Of a stretch of DNA of 64,000 nt, positions 2,917 to 54,922 are shown in pieces (the stretch's first letter is position 1; each line of letters begins with the position of its first letter). The position numbers were made by a program, and so were the translations under genes. Below the pieces are notes generated by a model, which was not told where the DNA came from, made no database searches, and saw nothing but the letters and a program-made list of their open reading frames with translations. The stretch is from IMG/VR virus record IMGVR_UViG_3300020202_000061, positions 124,001-188,000 of that record. One strand, written 5' to 3'.

Positions 2917-3198
2917 ATGTCCAGATATCTTAGCTCACTGGAAGATGCAGAGATTTTCAACAGTACGCAGAGGTCGGAAGTGAGCAAAGAGCAGTGTTAT
3001 TTGATTTGGTTTGGTGGAACCGAACATGGTGCGTTTGGGCTAACGCCACAGGAGGCTGTGGCTAATTGGAAGCGCGACTATATCGCTGATTTCCTGGCTG
3101 AACATCCAGGTTCAACGCCACCAGTACTGCCCTCTCAGGTGCTGATTCAGCCCGACACCAGAGAATGGCATGAATGGGAAAGTATTGATGTTCCGTGA
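2917..3198 (+). CDS. Hypothetical protein
   Basis: ORF track; TTGACA-N17-TAGGCT promoter (2882-2910) 6 nt upstream. Confidence 0.6.
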   Translation: MSRYLSSLEDAEIFNSTQRSEVSKEQCYLIWFGGTEHGAFGLTPQEAVANWKRDYIADFLAEHPGSTPPVLPSQVLIQPDTREWHEWESIDVP

Positions 3199-4200: not shown

Positions 4201-4211
4201 AGTGCAACCCC

Positions 4212-4240
4212 TTGACATTCTCAAGGGTTTGCCTTAAATA
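4212..4240 (+). promoter_or_regulatory. Hybrid promoter TTGACA-N17-TAAATA for tmRNA
   Basis: Exact spacing; same design at 54045-54073 (tRNA cluster) and 5628-5656. Confidence 0.7.
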
Positions 4241-4246
4241 GGTCTT

Positions 4247-4515
4247 GTGACGTTGAAGCGTTGAAGAACGCTACTCTGGACCTGGGGGCGGTACCCAGCG
4301 GCTCCACCAAAATGCCCTCGGGCGCTATGGGGCCGAAACAGGATCGACAGGTAGTCAGTAGGCACGTGGAGTCATCCGGCGGAAGCTCGGTTAACGCAAC
4401 ACAAACAGTAATTGCCAACGATAACTTCGTTGCGGACGAGGGTTTCCGTATGGCCGCCTAAGGCGGTCCTCGGTAATCCAAATCCATCGCCCGGTGGGCG
4501 GGAAACAGAAACACC
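4247..4515 (+). ncRNA. ssrA: Circularly permuted two-piece tmRNA (alphaproteobacterial type); tag ANDNFVADEGFRMAA
   Basis: Acceptor piece first: T-arm CTGGG-GGCGGTA-CCCAG then CGGCTCC-A-CCA (ends 4309); 19-nt spacer; coding piece starts GGGGCCGAAACAGGATCGAC (4329). GGGGCCG/CGGCTCC gives the G3:U70 Ala determinant; tag 4414-4461; 3' GGAAACAGAA motif. Outer ends approximate. Confidence 0.93.
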
Positions 4516-4545
4516 AGAGAGCCGCCTTCGGGCGGCTCTCTTTTT
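4516..4545 (+). terminator. Intrinsic terminator of tmRNA
   Basis: AGAGAGCCGCC-TTCG-GGCGGCTCTCT followed by TTTT. Confidence 0.9.
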
Positions 4546-4561
4546 GTGTGGGATTACGGAA

Positions 4562-4836: not shown

Positions 4837-5139
4837 ATGGCCTCGTACGCGACCGAACGTAAGATCAGAATCATCAAGGAAAAGCTCGGACCTGACTGGG
4901 AGACCTACACCCAGGGCAAGCGGATCGACGCTGCCTACAACGAACTCGTAGGGGATTCCCGCAAGAACCTCTTCTGCAAGCTTCGCCCCGAGACCAAGGC
5001 CAAGTTGGATGAGATGGTCCGGGACAACGACACGAAGATGGCCGAATTCATTGAGAGCCTGATCGAACGCGAATACGACCGCTTCACCCAAGCCAAAACC
5101 CGCAAAACCGAAGACCTCGCCGCCCGGTTCACTCGGTAA
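4837..5139 (+). CDS. Ribbon-helix-helix (CopG/Arc-like) DNA-binding protein
   Basis: KNLFCKLRPETKAKLDEMVRDNDTKMAEFIESLIERE strand-helix-helix pattern; AGGAG RBS. Confidence 0.55.
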   Translation: MASYATERKIRIIKEKLGPDWETYTQGKRIDAAYNELVGDSRKNLFCKLRPETKAKLDEMVRDNDTKMAEFIESLIEREYDRFTQAKTRKTEDLAARFTR

Positions 5140-8368: not shown

Positions 8369-8671
8369 ATGGGAATGTCCTTTCACGTGATCGCCGAGCG
8401 CGAACGTGACGCCGAGTTCCAACGCATGTTCGAGGTCCTTCGTGTATGCAAGGAAAACGACGTGTCCGTGCCCCCGGAGGTCGTCAAGTTCTTCGGTGAG
8501 AAAAATATCGAGAACTACGATGATGTCGAAACCATTGCGGATGCTGCCGTGGAGGTGGACATCGACAAGCTCGTGAAGGTGGTCCAGGGCGATTATTTCG
8601 AGGATCGTACCCTCGATCTCAAGGACCTCCCCGCCTCGGTCAAGCGGTTGAAGTTTCGCGTCAGCGCATGA
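8369..8671 (+). CDS. Hypothetical protein
   Basis: ORF track; AGGAG RBS. Confidence 0.65.
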   Translation: MGMSFHVIAERERDAEFQRMFEVLRVCKENDVSVPPEVVKFFGEKNIENYDDVETIADAAVEVDIDKLVKVVQGDYFEDRTLDLKDLPASVKRLKFRVSA

Positions 8672-8889
8672 TCGATCTGATCCAGATCGTCACCTCGGTG
8701 GCGGAATATCACTACGAGGTTACCGGCATTGCTGGTGCAATCCTCGCCGGAATCCTCATGGTGTTTGCGGTGATCTGGATGATCATCATATGGTTTGCGG
8801 TGATGCTGGCTCTGATCATTGGATTCGGGTGGCCTTTCATCTTGCTGGCCCTGATCATCTACATTATTGTTTGGATGATAAAAAGATGA
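8668..8889 (+). CDS. Small membrane protein
   Basis: Long hydrophobic stretch; ATGA overlap. Confidence 0.55.
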   Translation: MIDLIQIVTSVAEYHYEVTGIAGAILAGILMVFAVIWMIIIWFAVMLALIIGFGWPFILLALIIYIIVWMIKR

Positions 8890-8964
8890 AGAAAATTTGG
8901 GAAATGATCGGTGCTGGTATCGAAGTGATTTTCAACTTCGGAAGTTTGGATTAGAGGTGTCGCG

Positions 8965-9276
8965 ATGTGGTGGATTTTGGAATTCCTGGCAAATCCCTGG
9001 TTGATCTGGATCATGGTCGGGATTCTAGCCGTCGCCTTGATCGCGATGGTGGCGGAATTCCTGCTGGAAGCCTTCTCTGATTCTCCTCTATTCCATATGC
9101 TTGGACATTCGTGGTCCGTGAACAAGTGGGAGCCTGAGACGCGCCGAGCCATGCGCTGGGTCATGCCCTTGTGGATGATCTGGACCTTCTTGACATATGT
9201 TCCGGTCGCCATCATTTTGGGTACTCTTATTGGACTCGATGCCCTAAAGGACTCGATCAAGTCCTTTACCAAGTAA
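8965..9276 (+). CDS. Membrane protein
   Basis: Two hydrophobic segments; GAGG RBS. Confidence 0.6.
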   Translation: MWWILEFLANPWLIWIMVGILAVALIAMVAEFLLEAFSDSPLFHMLGHSWSVNKWEPETRRAMRWVMPLWMIWTFLTYVPVAIILGTLIGLDALKDSIKSFTK

Positions 9277-9284
9277 ATACCATC

Positions 9285-9317
9285 ATGAACAAGAACCTGC
9301 ACCGCACCTCCATATGA
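9285..9317 (+). CDS. Putative leader peptide MNKNLHRTSI (last codon ATA) upstream of tRNA-Ile(UAU)
   Basis: ATG 5 nt after TAAATA (same spacing as other apparent leaderless genes here); ATA-TGA overlaps a small terminator hairpin. Confidence 0.5.
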   Translation: MNKNLHRTSI

Positions 9318-9336
9318 CTCCCACTCAGGAGTTTTT
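9316..9336 (+). terminator. Small attenuator-like terminator immediately before tRNA-Ile
   Basis: (G)ACTCC-CACTCA-GGAGT(T) then TTT; weak stem. Confidence 0.45.
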
Positions 9337-9426
9337 GGGCGTGTGGTGTAATGGCAGCACAGCGGTCTTATAAGCCGTTCGTTCCGGACTGGAGCATAGA
9401 GACGGGTTCGATTCCCTCCACGCCTA
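9337..9426 (+). tRNA. tRNA-Ile(UAU) with long variable arm
   Basis: Acceptor GGGCGTG/CACGCCT, A73; anticodon loop CTTATAA; V-arm GTTCCG-GAC-TGGAGC; T-loop TTCGATT with bulged T-stem; CCA not encoded (CCG). Confidence 0.8.
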
Positions 9427-9430
9427 CCGA

Positions 9431-9451
9431 GGCCCCCTAGTGGGGCCTTTT
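9431..9451 (+). terminator. Intrinsic terminator after tRNA-Ile
   Basis: GGCCCC-CTAGT-GGGGCC-TTTT. Confidence 0.75.
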
Positions 9452-9459
9452 CTGCGTCT

Positions 9460-9543
9460 AAACCTAATTTTGGTGCAGCAGAAAAACCTAATTCCAGCAC
9501 AATAAACTCGAACCCGTACAACACAATAAACGCGAAACCGTAC
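9460..9543. repeat. Direct repeats with 24-nt period
   Basis: AAACCTAATT at 9460 and 9484; CACAATAAAC(T/G)CGAA(C/A)CCGTAC at 9498 and 9522. Confidence 0.7.
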
Positions 9544-9656
9544 GAAACCCCAGGGTTCGTCCCAGAGCCTGATCGTCTGTCCTAAATATTCCTGATCTTT
9601 TTACGTGGCTTAAGCCGCGCACGGGCCTTGTGCCCGATCAGGAGGAACTGACGGTT

Positions 9657-12600
9657 ATGGCTACGTTCAATAACCTCGATGGTACTATGCGCCCAACTTT
9701 CCAGATCGGAAAGGGTGGCCCCAAGCTCAACAACAACACCGGAACCATCGAAGCCAGGAACAACGCGAACTCCGCATACGCTCCGTTCCAGTCCAGCACG
9801 ATCACCCTGAATGGGGGCTCCTCCAGCACCACAGCATTAAATTTTGCATCCGATCCCAACACCGGTCTCTACCGGAGTGGTGCGGATGTTCTGATTCTCA
9901 CCGCAGGTGGTTCCGATCTGGTCACGGTGCAGTTGCCGGGTGCGACCAATTCCTCCGTCGTATTTGGTGGTGGTGCGGCGATTACGCTGCCCAGAGGTAA
10001 CACGGCGGCTCAGCCGAGCACGCCCGTCAACGGTATGATCCGTTACAACACGCAGACTGAACGATTCGAAGGTCGTGAGAACGGTGCGTGGGTGAACGTG
10101 ATCAGCGCGGGCAATGCCGTGCGTATCGCGGATACCGATTCGGATACCGTGATCGACACAGAGAGTTCACCGGACGAAGACATTATTCGTTTTAGCACCG
10201 GAGACAGTCCGGTCGGATACGGAGCGATTGCCAACATCATGACCTTGGCGAGTTCCGGCTGGATCATCAGTCTGGGAACCGCTGATACCGCAACGACTGT
10301 TGGCGCTCCCATCAGTATGACGGCGGGTACCGGCAACACCACGGGTGTTGGTGGTACGGTCACGATCAACGCCGGACAAGGTGGTGCGACTGCTGTTGGC
10401 GGCGCTATCACCATCAGCGGTGGTAGTGGTGGAAGCACTTCCGGCGCTGGTGGCGCAGTCACGGTGCGTGGTGGTACGGCCACTGCGGGTGCAGGTGGTG
10501 CAGTCACCGTCCAGGGCCGTGATGGTGTGGGCACCAACATGGCCGGTGGTAACGTAACAATCCAGGCCGGAGCCGCGACTGGTTCTGGCACTCCCGGACA
10601 GATCAGCCTGGATGGAACTGCGAGTGCGGTTCGTGTCCCGCTGGGTGTGGCGGCGGATGAAGCCGCTCTGACCACGAACGGTCAGATCAGATACGACACC
10701 GGCATCAATCGTTTCCGTGTTCGTCAGGGTGGTGCTTGGGGAAGTCTCGTTGTGGGCAATCCCGGTGTCCTCTCGGATGCCGATGGCGACACCATGATTC
10801 AGGTCGAAGAGAGCGCGGACGATGACACGATCCGATTCGACCTCGGTGATAGTCCGGCCGGATATGGGTCCATCCAGAACGCCCTGGTCATGTCCAGTGC
10901 CGGTTTTCACATCAACATGGGTGTGGCAGATGTAGCGACCACAGTTGGCGCTCGGATTGGCATCAGTGCGGGTCAAGGAAATACTTCAGGTGCTGGTGGA
11001 GCTATCGACATCTTTGCAGGTTCTGGTGGAAGCACCGGCACTGGTGGTGTTCTCACTCTGGCTGGTGGGGCCGGAGGAAGCACGAGTGGTGCTGGCGGCA
11101 ATGTAGAGATTCACGCTGGTGATGCGACCACATTGGGTGGTGGTGGCACTCTCACTATGACCGGTGGTAACGCGGTCGGTGGTAATAATTCGGGCGGCAC
11201 TATCACGATCACCGGAGGAACCCCGACCGGAACTGGGCAAGCAGGTTCCGTCAATATTACGGGTGGTGCCCTTGCGGGTGCTGGCACGCCCGGTTCGATC
11301 AGTATCAATGCGGGCGCGGGTAACGGCTCGACCACAGGCGGTACGATCTCGATCAACGCCGGTAACGGTGGCACGACCGGTGCAGGCGCGGTGGTCACGA
11401 TCAGTGGTGGTGCGGGCGGCTCCACGAGTGGTGCTGGTGGTGCTGTAACCCTTCAGGGTGGTGCTCCGACGACTTCCGGAGCGGGTGGCGCGGTCAACAT
11501 CACCGGACGTAACGCACTTGCCTCAAACAACGCGGGTGGCGCGGTCACGATCCTGGCGGGCAATGCCACGGGCACTGGTGTGGCAGGCTCGATCAGTCTC
11601 ACCGCAGGTGCGCTGGGCGGTGCAGGTACTGCGGGCGCGATCACTATCACAGCAGGTGCTGGCAACGGCGCGACCACAGGTGGCGGTCTCACGATGTCCG
11701 CCGGTAGCGGTGGATCGACCGGGGTTGGTGCGGCCACGATCCTCAATGGCGGTCCGGGTGGCACGACCTCAGGCGCTGGTGGCACGGTCACGATTCAGGG
11801 TGGTCTGCCGGTGGCAGGCGCAGGTGGCGCAGTCACCGTCCAGGGACGTGGTGGTGTCGGCACGAACCAAGCTGGTGGTGCGCTGAGCCTGTTGGCTGGG
11901 GCTGCGACCGGTACCGGTGTGGCTGGCTCTATCACGATCACGGGTGGTGCGTTGGGCGGTGCTGGCACTGCGGGAGCCGTCAATATCACGGGCGGTGCAG
12001 GCAACACCGGAACGACTGGTGGTGCGATGACGATCACTGCCGGTAACGGCGGTACGACCGGTGCGGGTGCGATTACCACGATCTCAGGCGGGCCGGGTGG
12101 TTCTACATCGGGTGCGGGTGGTGCGATCACCGTGCAGGGTGGTCTCCCGGTGGACGGAAATGGCGGCGCTGCGACTCTGGCCGGACGCAATGGCGTCGGC
12201 ACGAACCGTACAGGTGGCGCAGTCAGTATCACCTCGGGTAACGGAACCGGTACTGGTGGTTCAGGAAACATTTCTATCACTGCTGGAGCCCTGGCGGGTG
12301 CTGGTACTCCCGGAGTGATCTCGATCACCGGAGCAGCCGGATCGGGTGCGACCACAGGCGGAGCCGTCAATATCACGGGTGGTTCGGGTGGTACGACCGG
12401 TGTGGGCGCGAACATCGTGTTCACAGCGGGTCCAGGTGGCTCCACGAGTGGTGCTGGTGGTGCTGTAACCCTTCAGGGTGGAACCGCCACAGATGGCAAT
12501 GGCGGTGCGGTCAGTGTGATCGGTCGCGATGGCGTCGGCACCAACCGTAATGGCGGCTCGATCACGATCACCGCAGGTAGTCCAACCGGATCGGGCACGG

Positions 12601-24127: not shown

Positions 24128-24643
24128 TTGTTGAAATGGTGGCGAGGGCTCGCCGCGATCCTGCGATTTTTGGATCAGGTGACACCGTGGGAGTTCGTCC
24201 GTGTCATTAAGGATCGCGAGACGAACGATGATTATCTGGTTCGACATTATGTGTTCAACACGAGATGGCTGGCGGAGCATTTGGCTCGCCATATCCACCC
24301 GTGGTTCCATAAACTCTCCTACAGGGTGACCCTACATCGTACGTTGCGCTCGGATTTTGACGCCGCCCTCCATGATCATCCATGGAATTGGGGTTCGCGA
24401 ATCCTTGAAGGCGGCTATCTCGAACATACTCCGGAGGGAGTGTTCTGGCGTGATCCCCAACAGGGCTGGCGCTGGCGTAAGGCTGAGGATTTCCATCGAT
24501 TGGAACTCGCGCCCGACATCAACCCGGATCAGACCTGGAGCCTGTTCGTGATGGGTCCGCGCCGCAAGGACTGGGGATTTTTGAGTCCGACTGGGTGGGT
24601 TCAGTGGGAAACCTACTTGAATTCTCGGAAACTCCCTGGCTAA
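24128..24643 (+). CDS. Cupin-fold protein
   Basis: LHDHPW...IL.GGY.E...FHRLEL...W.LFVMGP...WGF motif. Confidence 0.65.
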   Translation: MLKWWRGLAAILRFLDQVTPWEFVRVIKDRETNDDYLVRHYVFNTRWLAEHLARHIHPWFHKLSYRVTLHRTLRSDFDAALHDHPWNWGSRILEGGYLEHTPEGVFWRDPQQGWRWRKAEDFHRLELAPDINPDQTWSLFVMGPRRKDWGFLSPTGWVQWETYLNSRKLPG

Positions 24644-24651
24644 ATATCTGA

Positions 24652-25023
24652 ATGAACCAGACTTTACTTCGAGACCTATTGGACCTGCGTATGGCGATGC
24701 TGGCTGCGGCCCAACCAGATACGGCATACGACCTCAATCAATATGAGCAGCGCAAGGAGAAATCGAACCTTGCAGGGCATTGTGCAGCCGTAGCTCATGT
24801 GGTACAGCAGCAGTTTGGTGGAGATATTATTGCGGGACAAGTTCAGGGCGAACTTCACTATTGGAATCGTCTTCCGGATGGATTAGAGGTGGATTTGAGT
24901 TCGGACCAGTTTGGTGGGGATGGATTGAATCCGTTGGTCACCGGTCGCCGTGTACCAACCAGAAAGACCGTGAATCCACGATTCGTCAAGTTTGCCCATC
25001 GAGTTGGCGAACATAAAGGTTGA
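24652..25023 (+). CDS. YunG-like protein
   Basis: GHC..VA.VVQ..FGG.I...HYWNRL.DG.EVDL..QF. Confidence 0.65.
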   Translation: MNQTLLRDLLDLRMAMLAAAQPDTAYDLNQYEQRKEKSNLAGHCAAVAHVVQQQFGGDIIAGQVQGELHYWNRLPDGLEVDLSSDQFGGDGLNPLVTGRRVPTRKTVNPRFVKFAHRVGEHKG

Positions 25024-53319: not shown

Positions 53320-54048
53320 ATGTCCGACGAGAATCCCTTCGAGCACCTATCTGACTCGGAATTGATGGACCGTCTTGGTGTGTCCTGGAATTCCGTGCTG
53401 AACCTGCGTGCGCAGATCAAGAAGGCCAAGGAAGCTCTTCCGGCCGCGTCCGAGGAATTGGAACAGCTTGAACGGGAGGCGAGCAAGCGCAAACGCCGCG
53501 ATGAATGGCTGGCGAAGCAGCCCGAGTTCGAACGAGCCCGTCAGGACCCGGAGTGGCAGGCGTGGCGCGTGGCATTCCTAGCGCGGGCTCGGGCGGCCGA
53601 AATCAACACACTGAACCTTCCAACGCCGGGTTTGAATTTCGTCCATGAGGACGTGTCTCTGACAGACCTCAACCTGTTCATGGCTCCGATCCATCCCGAG
53701 GAAGAGTTCGTTCGGTTCGACAATTCCTGGACCATGGCCCAGGTTGTGGTGCACGTCGGTCTATTCCAGAGCCTGACTCAGGCCAGAAAGAACGGTTTCA
53801 ACAAGCCGATTCCCAGTGGTTTCTCCCAGCATGTGATGGGGAAGAAGAAAACCACGGTGTTCATTCTGAACCGCTTACCCAAAGAGCCTAAGCCCACGCG
53901 TAGCATGTCTTGGGTCTACCAGGGTGTCAGCTATACCTACGGAAATGGCTTTTACACCTGCACCTATCCCGATGGTATTTGGTCGGTCTCGTTCAATGGA
54001 GTGCATTTCGTAAATGGAAAAGTTGTGCGTTCGAAAAGAAACTCTTGA
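53320..54048 (+). CDS. Hypothetical protein with possible S4-like RNA-binding motif
   Basis: Coiled-coil N-terminus; MAQVVVHVGLFQSLTQARKNG resembles the S4 motif. Confidence 0.55.
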   Translation: MSDENPFEHLSDSELMDRLGVSWNSVLNLRAQIKKAKEALPAASEELEQLEREASKRKRRDEWLAKQPEFERARQDPEWQAWRVAFLARARAAEINTLNLPTPGLNFVHEDVSLTDLNLFMAPIHPEEEFVRFDNSWTMAQVVVHVGLFQSLTQARKNGFNKPIPSGFSQHVMGKKKTTVFILNRLPKEPKPTRSMSWVYQGVSYTYGNGFYTCTYPDGIWSVSFNGVHFVNGKVVRSKRNS

Positions 54049-54094
54049 CACACCCTGGGGTTTCGACTAAATACGTCCTGATCGCGAGATCAAC

Positions 54095-54207
54095 CCGATC
54101 ATAAGTTAACAAGCCGAGGGTTCGCTGTCCCATGACGATGGGAATGCACCTTAGCTAGACGACCAGCTTTTAACTGGTTAGTATGGGTCCGAGTCCCATT
54201 GGTCGGT
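54095..54207 (+). tRNA. tRNA-Lys(UUU)-like RNA with a ~40-nt hairpin inserted in the D-loop
   Basis: Acceptor CCGATCA/TGGTCGG; ACCAG-CTTTTAA-CTGGT; T-arm ATGGG-TCCGAGT-CCCAT; no CCA. Confidence 0.6.
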
Positions 54208-54287: not shown

Positions 54288-54364
54288 CCAGCGGTAGCTC
54301 AGAGACAGTAGAGCGCCGGAGTTAAATCTGGAGGTCGGGGGTTCAATTCCTTCCCGCTGGGCCA
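54288..54364 (+). tRNA. Atypical tRNA with 6-nt anticodon loop (GTTAAA); possibly Asn-derived
   Basis: CCAGCGG/CCGCTGG, G73, CCA; stem CCGGA/TCTGG closes only 6 nt. Confidence 0.65.
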
Positions 54365-54385
54365 TTTTGTAGAGGAAACACGACT

Positions 54386-54424
54386 ATGTTGTTGCGTGAA
54401 GAGGAATCGATGAAGGCTGTGTAA
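54386..54424 (+). CDS. Leader peptide MLLREEESMKAV (GAA-GAG-GAA) of the tRNA-Glu operon
   Basis: AGAGGA RBS 9 nt upstream; 3' end overlaps the antiterminator strand. Confidence 0.7.
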   Translation: MLLREEESMKAV

Positions 54425-54482
54425 TGTGACCAACATTGTTGGTGCACACGCAGCCGCCTGGAGAAATCCCGGCGGCTTTTTT
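54415..54482 (+). promoter_or_regulatory. Transcription attenuator: antiterminator 54415-54455 versus terminator 54452-54482
   Basis: GGCTGTGT pairs with ACGCAGCC around the GTG-ACCAAC/GTTGGT-G-CAC hairpin; terminator AGCCGCC-TGGA-GAAA-TCCC-GGCGGCT-TTTTT shares AGCC. Confidence 0.75.
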
Positions 54483-54490
54483 GTTGCTCT

Positions 54491-54841: not shown

Positions 54842-54922
54842 CCCCCGTGGGATTGCGGTTGGTGTGATCGCCGGTTTCTCAAATCGGAGCACAGATGGGT
54901 TCGACGCCCATACGGGGGACCA
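54842..54922 (+). tRNA. tRNA-Glu(CUC), divergent
   Basis: CCCCCGT/ACGGGGG, D-stem GATT/GATC, CCGGT-TTCTCAA-ATCGG, ATGGG-TTCGACG-CCCAT, CCA. Confidence 0.8.

Follow-up and report, generated by a model that had tools for sequence, protein, structure and literature searches.

A ten-codon reading frame ending in AUA, predicted to pair with the start of a jumbo-phage tRNA-Ile(UAU), as a possible self-sensing leader

A jumbo-phage gene for the tRNA that reads the rare isoleucine codon AUA is preceded by a ten-codon reading frame that ends in AUA and is predicted to pair with, and trap, the start of the tRNA. The tRNA may therefore be released only when ribosomes stall on that codon. This reading is plausible but unproven, as no related genome was found in which it could be tested. 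The gene lies in a stretch of 64,000 nucleotides (hereafter the window; positions 124,001 to 188,000 of IMG/VR record IMGVR_UViG_3300020202_000061). An earlier note had described a TAAATA promoter, an ATG five nucleotides later, a mini-ORF ending in ATA, a TGA overlapping a small hairpin followed by a T-run, the tRNA and a second terminator. We found every one of these elements on the + strand, and this observation is confirmed. The features of the locus are as follows.

8965-9276 (+): ORF of 103 amino acids, upstream of the leader.
9274-9279 (+): TAAATA, a -10-type promoter element (GTAAATA with G9273), whose TAA is also the stop codon of the 103-aa ORF.
9285-9317 (+): mini-ORF MNKNLHRTSI plus stop, with its ATG at 9285-9287, five bases after TAAATA; the predicted transcription start is A9285, which would make it a leaderless mRNA.
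9298-9312 (+): 5' arm of a long predicted hairpin (the "anti-acceptor"), covering the last five codons of the mini-ORF.
9312-9314 (+): terminal sense codon ATA, cognate to the UAU anticodon, followed by TGA at 9315-9317.
9316-9333 (+): small apical hairpin, GACUCC, 6-nt loop, GGAGUU (core stem ACTCC 9317-9321 / GGAGT 9328-9332), the terminator stem of the earlier note.
9332-9336 (+): run of five T abutting the first base of the tRNA, which could serve as a pause site, a weak terminator tract or a single-stranded RNase P leader.
9336-9350 (+): 3' arm of the long hairpin, U-1 plus tRNA nucleotides 1-14 (acceptor 5' strand, positions 8-9 and D-stem 5' strand).
9337-9428 (+): tRNA with anticodon UAU (9369-9371), discriminator A at 9426 and CC encoded, with a long variable arm and a bulged T stem.
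9381-9395 (+): variable-arm hairpin, a 4-bp stem with the 7-nt loop CGGACUG.
9431-9452 (+): strong intrinsic terminator that closes the unit.

We first examined the start of the mini-ORF. There is no Shine-Dalgarno sequence and no -35 box (the -35 region reads ACTCGA), a consensus scan called neither a promoter nor a terminator here, and a sigma-70-type promoter, with -35 and -10 hexamers at 16-18 nt spacing, was rejected. The reading frame is open upstream to GTG 9171. However, TAAATA-N5-ATG occurs 4 times in the window against 0.13 expected, and 0 of 100 shuffles reached 4. Among spacings 0-12 it was found only at spacing 5, apart from one N7 site. The other three copies head Pfam-positive genes (Usg-like, YunG and PAAR) that also lack a Shine-Dalgarno sequence, suggesting that the mini-ORF carries a specific, non-random and probably leaderless start module of this phage; translation of the mini-ORF has not been shown, which leaves undecided whether its start is a working one. 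TAAATA lies mostly in intergenic DNA and is the -10 of two perfect TTGACA-N17-TAAATA sites, in front of the tmRNA and the tRNA cluster. T4-type late promoters (TATAAATA, or CTAAATA in Aeh1; PMC1524935) need no -35 box and place the start site 6 nt after the motif, from which the start at A9285 was inferred. CTAAATA sites in the window are mostly intergenic, but the motif here has G rather than C/T before TAAATA, and its TAA is explained by the upstream stop codon. With start sites unmapped and the phage's sigma factor not assessed, assignment to this promoter type stays undecided.

The mini-ORF uses preferred codons except for its last one. ATA makes up 3.7 per 1000 codons and 6% of Ile codons in the long ORFs, whereas eight of the other codons rank first or second in their family and TCC ranks fourth of six. 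In random 60-nt sequence of this composition, an ATG ORF ending in ATA arose in 0.19% of trials, and one containing any ATA in 1.1%. Leader-peptide attenuators usually carry two or more cognate codons in tandem; here there is a single ATA, and this observation does not settle whether the leader qualifies as enriched. The phage hardly uses AUA, and its 1578-aa fibre gene has none. The amino-acid identity of AUA was not inferred from alignments, because confident genes hold too few AUA codons.

We next analyzed the RNA structure of the leader. The small hairpin is only -5.1 kcal/mol, or -6.4 kcal/mol with a G.U pair, much weaker than the evident terminators of this phage (-12.7 to -22.7 kcal/mol). 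Weak hairpin-plus-T4 sites occur in the window at the random rate (30 observed against 25 +/- 3.6); a narrower definition, which misses long stems and returned only two sites, both flanking the tRNA, is not relied on. Since the U5 tract is present but the 5-6 bp stem is weak, its standing as an intrinsic terminator is not settled by these data. By contrast, the terminator downstream of the tRNA reaches -12.9 to -15.2 kcal/mol (z = -2.27) and is followed by TTTTCT. The small hairpin is the tip of a predicted hairpin of about 20 bp (9298-9350, -28 kcal/mol, z = -5.5, 0 of 200 shuffles folding as well), and only 0.1% of all 53-nt windows fold as well. In this structure 9298-9312 pairs with 9336-9350 through 14 pairs with one C/C mismatch, including G.U pairs that make the helix specific to the + strand RNA. 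The duplex energy is -20.1 kcal/mol, reached by 1.75% of shuffles. In the transcript 9285-9428 the trapped fold is -48.3 kcal/mol against -38.8 kcal/mol for the cloverleaf state, a difference of 9.5 kcal/mol, with pair probabilities of 0.98-1.0, while the first 13 nt, which include the AUG, are unpaired. The probability that the leader pairs with tRNA nucleotides 1-12 is 0.91, ranking 2nd of 691 tRNA genes examined (median 0.005). These predictions ignore tRNA tertiary structure, modifications and RNase P binding, and about 1% of tRNA genes reach a leader-pairing probability of at least 0.75 in silico. No competing antiterminator was found: the long stem stacks coaxially under the small hairpin, and no alternative pairing of the 3' arm removes it, so that the mutually exclusive structures of a classical attenuator are absent. 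An origin of the leader as a duplicated tRNA 3' end was rejected, as the complementarity runs across positions 1-14, which no single tRNA segment matches.

The tRNA itself is unusual. ARAGORN calls tRNA-Ile(tat) at 9337-9428, and the Rfam tRNA model (RF00005) scores 45.8 bits (E = 1.4e-6) against a gathering score of 29, over model positions 1-71 (9337-9426). No T-box or other leader family matched in Rfam. The variable region is about 23 nt and forms a stem-loop (4-5 bp stem) between the anticodon and T arms, as in class II tRNAs, whose variable region exceeds 10 nt, and the T stem has a one-base bulge. The tRNA belongs to a widespread viral family of long-variable-arm tRNA(UAU), defined in this work by an anticodon stem-loop reading GGUCUUAUAAGCC, a pattern that finds 77 viral contigs, and by a covarying variable-arm helix. 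In that helix 98.8% of cells are paired, a percentage inflated because segments were chosen for at least 3 pairs, and the covariation score is 1.08 against 0.27 in shuffles. The variable arm of our tRNA has the same position and shape, but it lacks the GAU triplet that is otherwise invariant in the family loop: 20 of 21 distinct arms have GAU, whereas the tRNA studied here has GAC. Membership in the allo-tRNAs (Mukai et al. 2017; PMC5389517) was ruled out. These have 8/4 or 9/3 acceptor/T stems, a long D stem with a tetraloop, and G73 or U73, whereas here the acceptor stem has 7 bp (an eighth pair would be U-C), the T stem has 5 bp with one bulged C, the D stem has 4 bp with a 7-nt loop, and the discriminator is A73. 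The nematode nev-tRNA-Ile(UAU) (PMC3333845, PMC4300185) also combine a long variable arm with a UAU anticodon, and both groups were found in metagenomes and phages, but nev-tRNAs are eukaryotic and charged with leucine. The tRNA-Ile(UAU) of Mycoplasma mobile and lactic acid bacteria, which decode AUA without lysidine (PMC3575796), are ordinary class I tRNAs that work with an adapted IleRS; which enzyme charges the present tRNA is not known.

In order to find the locus in other genomes, we carried out several searches, none of which returned a diverged orthologue. A blastn search of 8600-10000 against GenBank phages gave no match. The 103-aa upstream protein has no relatives among 5.8 billion proteins, and a pattern scan of viral contigs found only itself. 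Four independent assemblies that carry the locus are identical, indicating that its oddities are not assembly errors but providing no evolutionary test of any element; conservation of the terminal ATA, which had been put forward in advance as a criterion for the proposal, could thus not be examined. A 20-mer of the anticodon arm, searched in metagenomes, recovered only the phage itself, ordinary short tRNA(UAU) genes and chance hits in coding sequences. Relatives of the fibre N-terminus are common but have no tRNA nearby, and a tRNA-Glu pattern found no relative of the Glu leader discussed below.

We also carried out the survey of phage tRNA upstream regions that the earlier note had suggested. 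In a permutation test over 701 such regions, cognate last codons were not enriched (p = 0.12-0.15). Within the tRNA(UAU) family, ATA-terminal ORFs occur in 8 of 52 contexts against 23 of 641 for other tRNAs, but this excess shrinks to p = 0.04 once tRNA clusters are controlled for. It is largely an excess of ATA-plus-stop hexamers, and includes a TATAAT box, real gene ends and an ORF inside a preceding tRNA. Among these 52 other contexts, none has the hairpin or the leader pairing. The same genome does contain a Glu-codon leader in front of four tRNA-Glu genes, with a Shine-Dalgarno sequence, EEE and a hairpin that competes with a strong terminator, which looks like a real attenuator.

Taken together, the earlier note's interpretation is only partly supported. 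It had proposed that a ribosome stalled on AUA would cover the terminator arm and allow read-through into a lysidine-independent AUA decoder, as part of a general design in which each backup tRNA is gated by a sensor for its own codon. A ribosome with AUA in its A site would indeed sit over the structure that precedes the tRNA. However, a ribosome at the UGA would cover the 5' arm of the small hairpin just as well, so that terminator masking alone discriminates poorly, and the stronger structure, a leader-tRNA helix sequestering the tRNA 5' strand, points to gating of tRNA folding and maturation. A general design across phages is not seen.

We tentatively propose stall-licensed tRNA folding instead, at less than even confidence, in a compact unit of about 165 nt comprising promoter, leaderless mini-ORF, structured leader, tRNA(UAU) and terminator. 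What the analysis demonstrates is that the sequence modules are present, that the start module is significantly enriched in this phage, and that the RNA structure, itself a prediction, is a statistical outlier; the mechanism that follows is inferred. Transcription would start at A9285, giving an RNA that begins with AUG and is translated without a Shine-Dalgarno sequence. Without a ribosome on the last codons, 9298-9312 would pair with tRNA bases 1-14 as soon as these are made, the small hairpin and U-run possibly adding a pause or some termination; the acceptor and D stems could then not form, and RNase P would have no substrate. A ribosome waiting at the rare AUA would cover roughly 9297-9325, including the whole trapping arm and the 5' arm of the small hairpin. 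If it waited the roughly 2 s that RNA polymerase needs to make the remaining 80 or so nucleotides, the tRNA would fold with its own 3' strand and RNase P would cut after U9336. When AUA is read quickly, the ribosome would terminate at UGA and leave, and the trap would form. The result would be a backup AUA decoder made only when AUA decoding fails, limiting the cost of a U34 tRNA that can misread AUG; tRNA(UAU) cannot tell AUA from AUG on E. coli ribosomes (PMC3575796). Besides the imperfect promoter, the single sensor codon, the little apparent need for AUA decoding, the restriction to one genome, the lack of a similar leader in any other member of the tRNA family and the aberrant T stem and variable loop of the tRNA, this model is weakened by the stop context, since UGA followed by C is a slow termination context in E. 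coli and would blur the difference between stalled and unstalled ribosomes.

Other explanations appear less likely than this one, but were not excluded. The nearest is an ordinary tRNA gene with a fortuitous ORF, made constitutively from its own TAAATA promoter or by read-through from the upstream operon, the small hairpin and U-run acting as a leaky terminator, a pause or a protective 3' end for the upstream mRNA after RNase P cleavage, and the terminal ATA and leader complementarity being coincidences. The missing Shine-Dalgarno sequence, the weak stem, the random rate of similar hairpins and the lack of enrichment across tRNA upstream regions agree with this view, as does the fact that the eight tRNA or tmRNA genes in the window offered several chances of a match; other phages also place hairpin-plus-T-runs directly before tRNAs without any cognate ORF. 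Yet several independent low-probability features would have to coincide within 60 nt: an ATG at exactly N5 after TAAATA (about 1 in 64 even if the promoter is granted), the ATA as last codon, and the hairpin involving tRNA nucleotides 1-14. A constitutive tRNA whose 5' strand is predicted to be sequestered by 9.5 kcal/mol also makes little sense.

It is also possible, though we consider it unlikely, that the long hairpin is functional independently of ribosomes, as a double-strand-specific nuclease site separating the upstream mRNA from the tRNA, a protective 5' structure, or a trap opened by a protein, a helicase or temperature; the mini-ORF may or may not be translated, and AUA would not be sensed. 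The strength of the hairpin as an outlier, the many other stable intergenic hairpins of this phage, and an internal loop whose 3' side (9334-9335) lies right next to the tRNA 5' end are compatible with this. However, cutting within or next to the helix would leave the tRNA 5' strand bound to the leader fragment (-20 kcal/mol), and this view does not explain why the 5' arm coincides with an ORF that carries the phage's start module and ends in the cognate rare codon. Least likely is that the tRNA-like gene is decaying or not used in translation, perhaps a relic or a decoy as was suggested for allo-tRNA(UAU), variants of which were inactive in E. coli (PMC5389517), in which case the leader pairing would have no regulatory meaning. 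The bulged T stem, the lost GAU and the rarity of AUA fit this, whereas the Rfam score well above threshold, the intact acceptor stem, anticodon stem-loop, T loop and discriminator A, the position between a promoter-like module and a strong terminator, and the identity of four assemblies do not.

The proposed arrangement can be compared with several known systems. Ribosome-mediated attenuation of amino-acid operons (trp, his, leu, thr, ilv, pheA) and of pheST likewise uses a short ORF, with codons for the molecule in short supply, upstream of a structured leader, and the position of the ribosome decides the fate of the downstream gene. Here, however, the regulated gene is the tRNA itself, the single sensor codon is the last sense codon, there is no terminator/antiterminator pair, the ORF appears to be leaderless, and the proposed output is tRNA folding and maturation rather than mainly termination. 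In stall-dependent switches (ermC, cat/cmlA leaders, tnaC) and pyrBI-type coupling, a single stall site near the end of a short leader ORF remodels or masks the RNA downstream, or a closely following ribosome prevents a hairpin from forming, but those systems sense drugs, tryptophan or UTP and control an mRNA, whereas here the trigger would be the decoding speed of one codon and the target a tRNA precursor. T-box riboswitches also give codon-specific feedback on tRNA status through a leader RNA, but bind uncharged tRNA directly through a specifier codon, regulate synthetase and amino-acid genes and need no ribosome. In T4-type late promoters and leaderless mRNAs a short -10-only motif lies at a fixed distance from the start site, and here the AUG sits at the predicted +1; the motif here reads GTAAATA, however, and the phage's sigma factor and start sites have not been mapped.

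tRNA genes are generally thought to be controlled at the promoter level and by processing, and we found no described case of a tRNA gated by a leader peptide that carries its own codon. If real, the locus would be a minimal feedback loop that measures the decoding speed of one codon and answers by releasing the matching tRNA, and it would add sequestration of a tRNA acceptor strand to the known terminator/antiterminator switch, as well as provide a compact codon-specific sensor for synthetic biology. Independently, the family of long-variable-arm tRNA(UAU) with a GAU loop raises the question of how such tRNAs are charged. More speculatively, and on present evidence unlikely though not excluded, this leader and the Glu-codon leader of the same genome would together define a class of codon-sensing attenuators that gate backup tRNAs, and such tRNAs might counter host depletion or cleavage of specific tRNAs. 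If real, the proposed control of this one tRNA would itself explain how a phage can carry a tRNA such as an unmodified UAU decoder, which misreads AUG, without paying the cost all the time, and would connect phage tRNA sets to host defences that deplete tRNAs.

We first examined whether the features described in the earlier note were present in the sequence. The window is part of an uncultured jumbo phage and lies on a 347.5 kb IMG/VR contig. A 103-aa protein encoded just upstream of the tRNA gene is also found on a 401 kb contig. On the + strand, a run of small genes ends with the membrane-like ORF encoding this protein, and the following elements were located:

8965-9276 (+), membrane-like ORF of 103 aa
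9274-9279 (+), TAAATA, whose TAA is the stop codon of that ORF
9285 (+), ATG of the mini-ORF
9285-9317 (+), mini-ORF MNKNLHRTSI, with ATA at 9312-9314 and TGA at 9315-9317
9317-9332 (+), stem ACTCC/GGAGT with a 6-nt loop and five T
9337-9428 (+), tRNA, with the anticodon TAT at 9369-9371
9431-9452 (+), strong hairpin plus T-run

The tRNA was confirmed by Rfam, with a score of 45.8 bits against a gathering score of 29, and four independent assemblies were identical across the region. The observation made in the earlier note is confirmed.

We next searched for transcription and translation start signals. A consensus scan did not reveal any sigma-70 promoter at this position, and no Shine-Dalgarno sequence is present. 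However, TAAATA is clearly the -10 element of this phage. The only two perfect TTGACA-N17-TAAATA promoters in the window, at 4212-4240 and 54045-54073 (+), are located in front of the two RNA transcription units, the tmRNA gene and the tRNA cluster. Most of the 18 TAAATA sites are intergenic, often as CTAAATA, and one lies 68 nt before the fibre gene. In this last region, direct repeats (AAACCTAATT twice, and a 24-nt unit twice; 9460-9595, +) are found between the tRNA terminator and a CTAAATAT motif at 9582-9589, 68 nt before the 1569-aa Gly-rich fibre gene, which starts at 9657 and contains no AUA codon. The arrangement TAAATA-N5-ATG occurs four times (2636-2649, 9274-9287 and 24641-24654 on the + strand, 47947-47934 on the - strand) whereas 0.13 occurrences were expected, and none of 100 shuffled sequences reached four. 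Among spacings of 0 to 12 nt it was found only at spacing 5, apart from one N7 site, indicating a strict gene-start module. The other three copies start genes whose Pfam domains begin at their N termini (Usg-like, YunG and PAAR), and none of these genes has a Shine-Dalgarno sequence. This suggests leaderless mRNAs produced from a promoter resembling T4 late promoters. T4-type late promoters place the start site 6 nt after the motif (PMC1524935), which would put +1 on A9285. We infer that the mini-ORF is the 5' end of a leaderless transcript and that it is probably translated, although the base preceding TAAATA is G rather than C or T and no transcript ends have been mapped. A perfect palindrome, AAAGGACT-N6-AGTCCTTT (9246-9267, +), lies inside the end of the 103-aa ORF and spans about -39 to -18 relative to the predicted start at 9285. 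It is unique in the window, folds at -9.5 kcal/mol as RNA, and could be an operator or an mRNA hairpin.

The small stem preceding the tRNA has a predicted energy of -5.1 kcal/mol, or -6.4 kcal/mol if a G.U pair is included, whereas the evident terminators of this phage range from -12.7 to -22.7 kcal/mol. Weak hairpins followed by four T occur in the window at the random rate; a narrower count of such sites was misleading and is not relied upon here. Folding of a longer segment showed that the small stem is the tip of a predicted 20-bp hairpin extending from 9298 to 9350, in which leader bases 9298-9312, corresponding to the last five codons of the mini-ORF, pair with U9336 and with bases 1-14 of the tRNA. 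This hairpin has a predicted energy of -28 kcal/mol (z = -5.5), none of 200 shuffled sequences folded as well, and only 0.1% of all 53-nt windows did so. The energy of the leader-tRNA duplex was -20.1 kcal/mol, a value reached by 1.75% of 2000 shuffles. For the transcript 9285-9428, the trapped fold was predicted at -48.3 kcal/mol, against -38.8 kcal/mol for the small hairpin plus the cloverleaf, with pair probabilities of about 1 for the trap and about 0 for the acceptor stem. The probability that the leader pairs with tRNA nucleotides 1-12 was 0.91, ranking second of 691, with a median of 0.005. The G.U pairs make the helix specific to the + strand RNA. These values are secondary-structure predictions only and do not take tRNA tertiary folding into account.

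We then considered the match between the last codon of the mini-ORF and the anticodon of the tRNA. ATA is among the rarest codons, accounting for 3.7 per 1000 codons and 6% of Ile codons in the long ORFs. Of the other codons of the mini-ORF, eight rank first or second in their family and TCC ranks fourth of six. In random 60-nt sequences of this composition, an ATG ORF ending in ATA appeared in 0.19% of trials, and an ORF containing any ATA in 1.1%. As there are eight RNA genes in the window, the match alone would be borderline, but its position inside a specific start module and on the trapping arm makes chance less likely.

A ribosome with AUA in its A site would cover roughly 9297-9325, including the whole trapping arm and the 5' arm of the small hairpin; this estimate is inferred from the established footprint geometry. 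The 3' acceptor strand of the tRNA is made about 85 nt later, and only a ribosome that dwells for about that long would let the cloverleaf form and RNase P cut after U9336. A ribosome reading AUA quickly would terminate at UGA and leave, and the trap would then form. In this model the small hairpin and the U-run may act as a pause or a partial terminator. The earlier note had proposed that the stalled ribosome masks a terminator arm. We retain its idea of a sensor for the tRNA's own codon but change the output from terminator masking to licensed folding, and its interpretation is partly supported. Terminator masking alone is unconvincing because the stem is weak, because a ribosome at UGA masks it just as well as one at AUA, and because no antiterminator exists. 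Whereas the sequence elements and the enrichment of the start module were observed directly, the helix is a prediction, and the start at A9285, the translation of the mini-ORF and the response to a stalled ribosome are inferences. We consider this model tentative.

The earlier note had named conservation of the terminal ATA in homologous loci as a test of its proposal. No diverged orthologue was found in any collection searched, so that nothing here has been tested by evolution. The note had also called for a survey of the regions upstream of phage tRNA genes. In 52 other contexts of this tRNA family, none had a similar hairpin or leader pairing, and many of these tRNAs sit directly behind another tRNA. 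ATA-terminal ORFs were somewhat more frequent upstream of these tRNAs (8 of 52, against 23 of 641), with p = 0.04 after controlling for clusters. However, this signal is mostly an ATA-plus-stop hexamer, and it includes a TATAAT box, real gene ends, and an ORF inside a preceding tRNA. Strong hairpin-plus-T-run elements placed 4-8 nt before a tRNA gene were found in other phages, in 5 of 695 upstream regions, for instance in the retrieved viral loci L004 (about 4920-4955), L046 (about 3040-3082), L065 (about 11610-11649) and L028 (upstream of 1054, - strand). In L046 and L065 these elements lie just downstream of, or overlap, a TTGACA-type promoter, and none has a cognate-codon ORF. There are three rival explanations. 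A fortuitous ORF in front of a constitutively made tRNA is unlikely but not far behind it, a hairpin acting independently of ribosomes is somewhat less likely, and a decaying tRNA, or one not used in translation, is the least likely of the three.

A second leader in the same window provides some context. At 54387-54425 (+), within a Glu leader spanning 54370-54490, an ORF MLLREEESMKAV follows a GAGGA Shine-Dalgarno sequence. A hairpin that includes the end of this ORF, GGCUGUG...CACGCAGCC, competes with the base of a strong terminator at 54452-54482 (-18.3 kcal/mol), which lies 10 nt before the first of four tRNA-Glu genes called by ARAGORN. It looks like a classical attenuator and raises the prior for the Ile leader, although no relatives of it were found either. 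The tRNA cluster also contains irregular tRNA-like genes, at 54148-54203, 54288-54364 and 54842-54922 (+): one has a 6-nt anticodon loop and is called 'tRNA-???' by ARAGORN, with an Rfam score of 45 bits, one is a sub-threshold tRNA-like stretch at 21.2 bits, and a fourth 'tRNA-Glu' is called by ARAGORN but gave no Rfam match at E <= 1. The phage further encodes a two-piece (permuted) tmRNA of the alphaproteobacterial type (4208-4552, +; Rfam 113.6 and 108.5 bits; tag ANDNFVADEGFRMAA). This hints at an alphaproteobacterial host, and the tmRNA could also rescue ribosomes stalled on leaders.

The tRNA itself has a 7-bp acceptor stem, a normal D arm, the anticodon loop CUUAUAA and the discriminator A73. 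Its variable region is about 23 nt long with a 4-5 bp hairpin, and its T stem has a bulged C. A pattern built on its anticodon arm revealed a widespread family of tRNA(UAU) genes with a long variable arm, present in 77 viral contigs (viral loci L002 and L004-L078) and also in genomes of Rhodobacter, Cereibacter and Lysinibacter, among others (genome loci L091, L095, L096, L098 and L102). Most members have A73 and an encoded CCA, and many have a D arm with a 4-nt loop and a 6-bp anticodon stem. In this family the variable-arm stem covaries strongly, and its 7-nt loop almost always reads YNGAUNN, with GAU in 20 of 21 distinct arms, whereas the window has GAC. The family is not allo-tRNA by definition, since it is 7/5 with A73. 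By contrast, the planctomycete hits to the same pattern (Planctomycetota genome loci L088 and L099) are 8/4 allo-tRNA(UAU)-like genes with G or C at the discriminator position and a different variable loop, and in L088 a perfect 9-bp hairpin joins the upstream DNA to the start of the called tRNA. We found no description of the GAU-loop family in the literature searched. The loop resembles the anticodon loop of the major tRNA-Ile, tRNA-Ile(GAU). As E. coli IleRS charges UAU tRNAs poorly (PMC3575796), we conjecture that the loop may be an added identity element.

Of the readings considered, the one we hold most likely, although tentatively, is a ribosome-mediated attenuation that differs from those already described in acting on a tRNA. 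It rests on one genome and on predicted structure. A reason for the phage to gate this tRNA is that tRNA(UAU) cannot tell AUA from AUG on E. coli ribosomes (PMC3575796), and in this view the tRNA would be allowed to fold only when a ribosome dwells on the codon that it reads.
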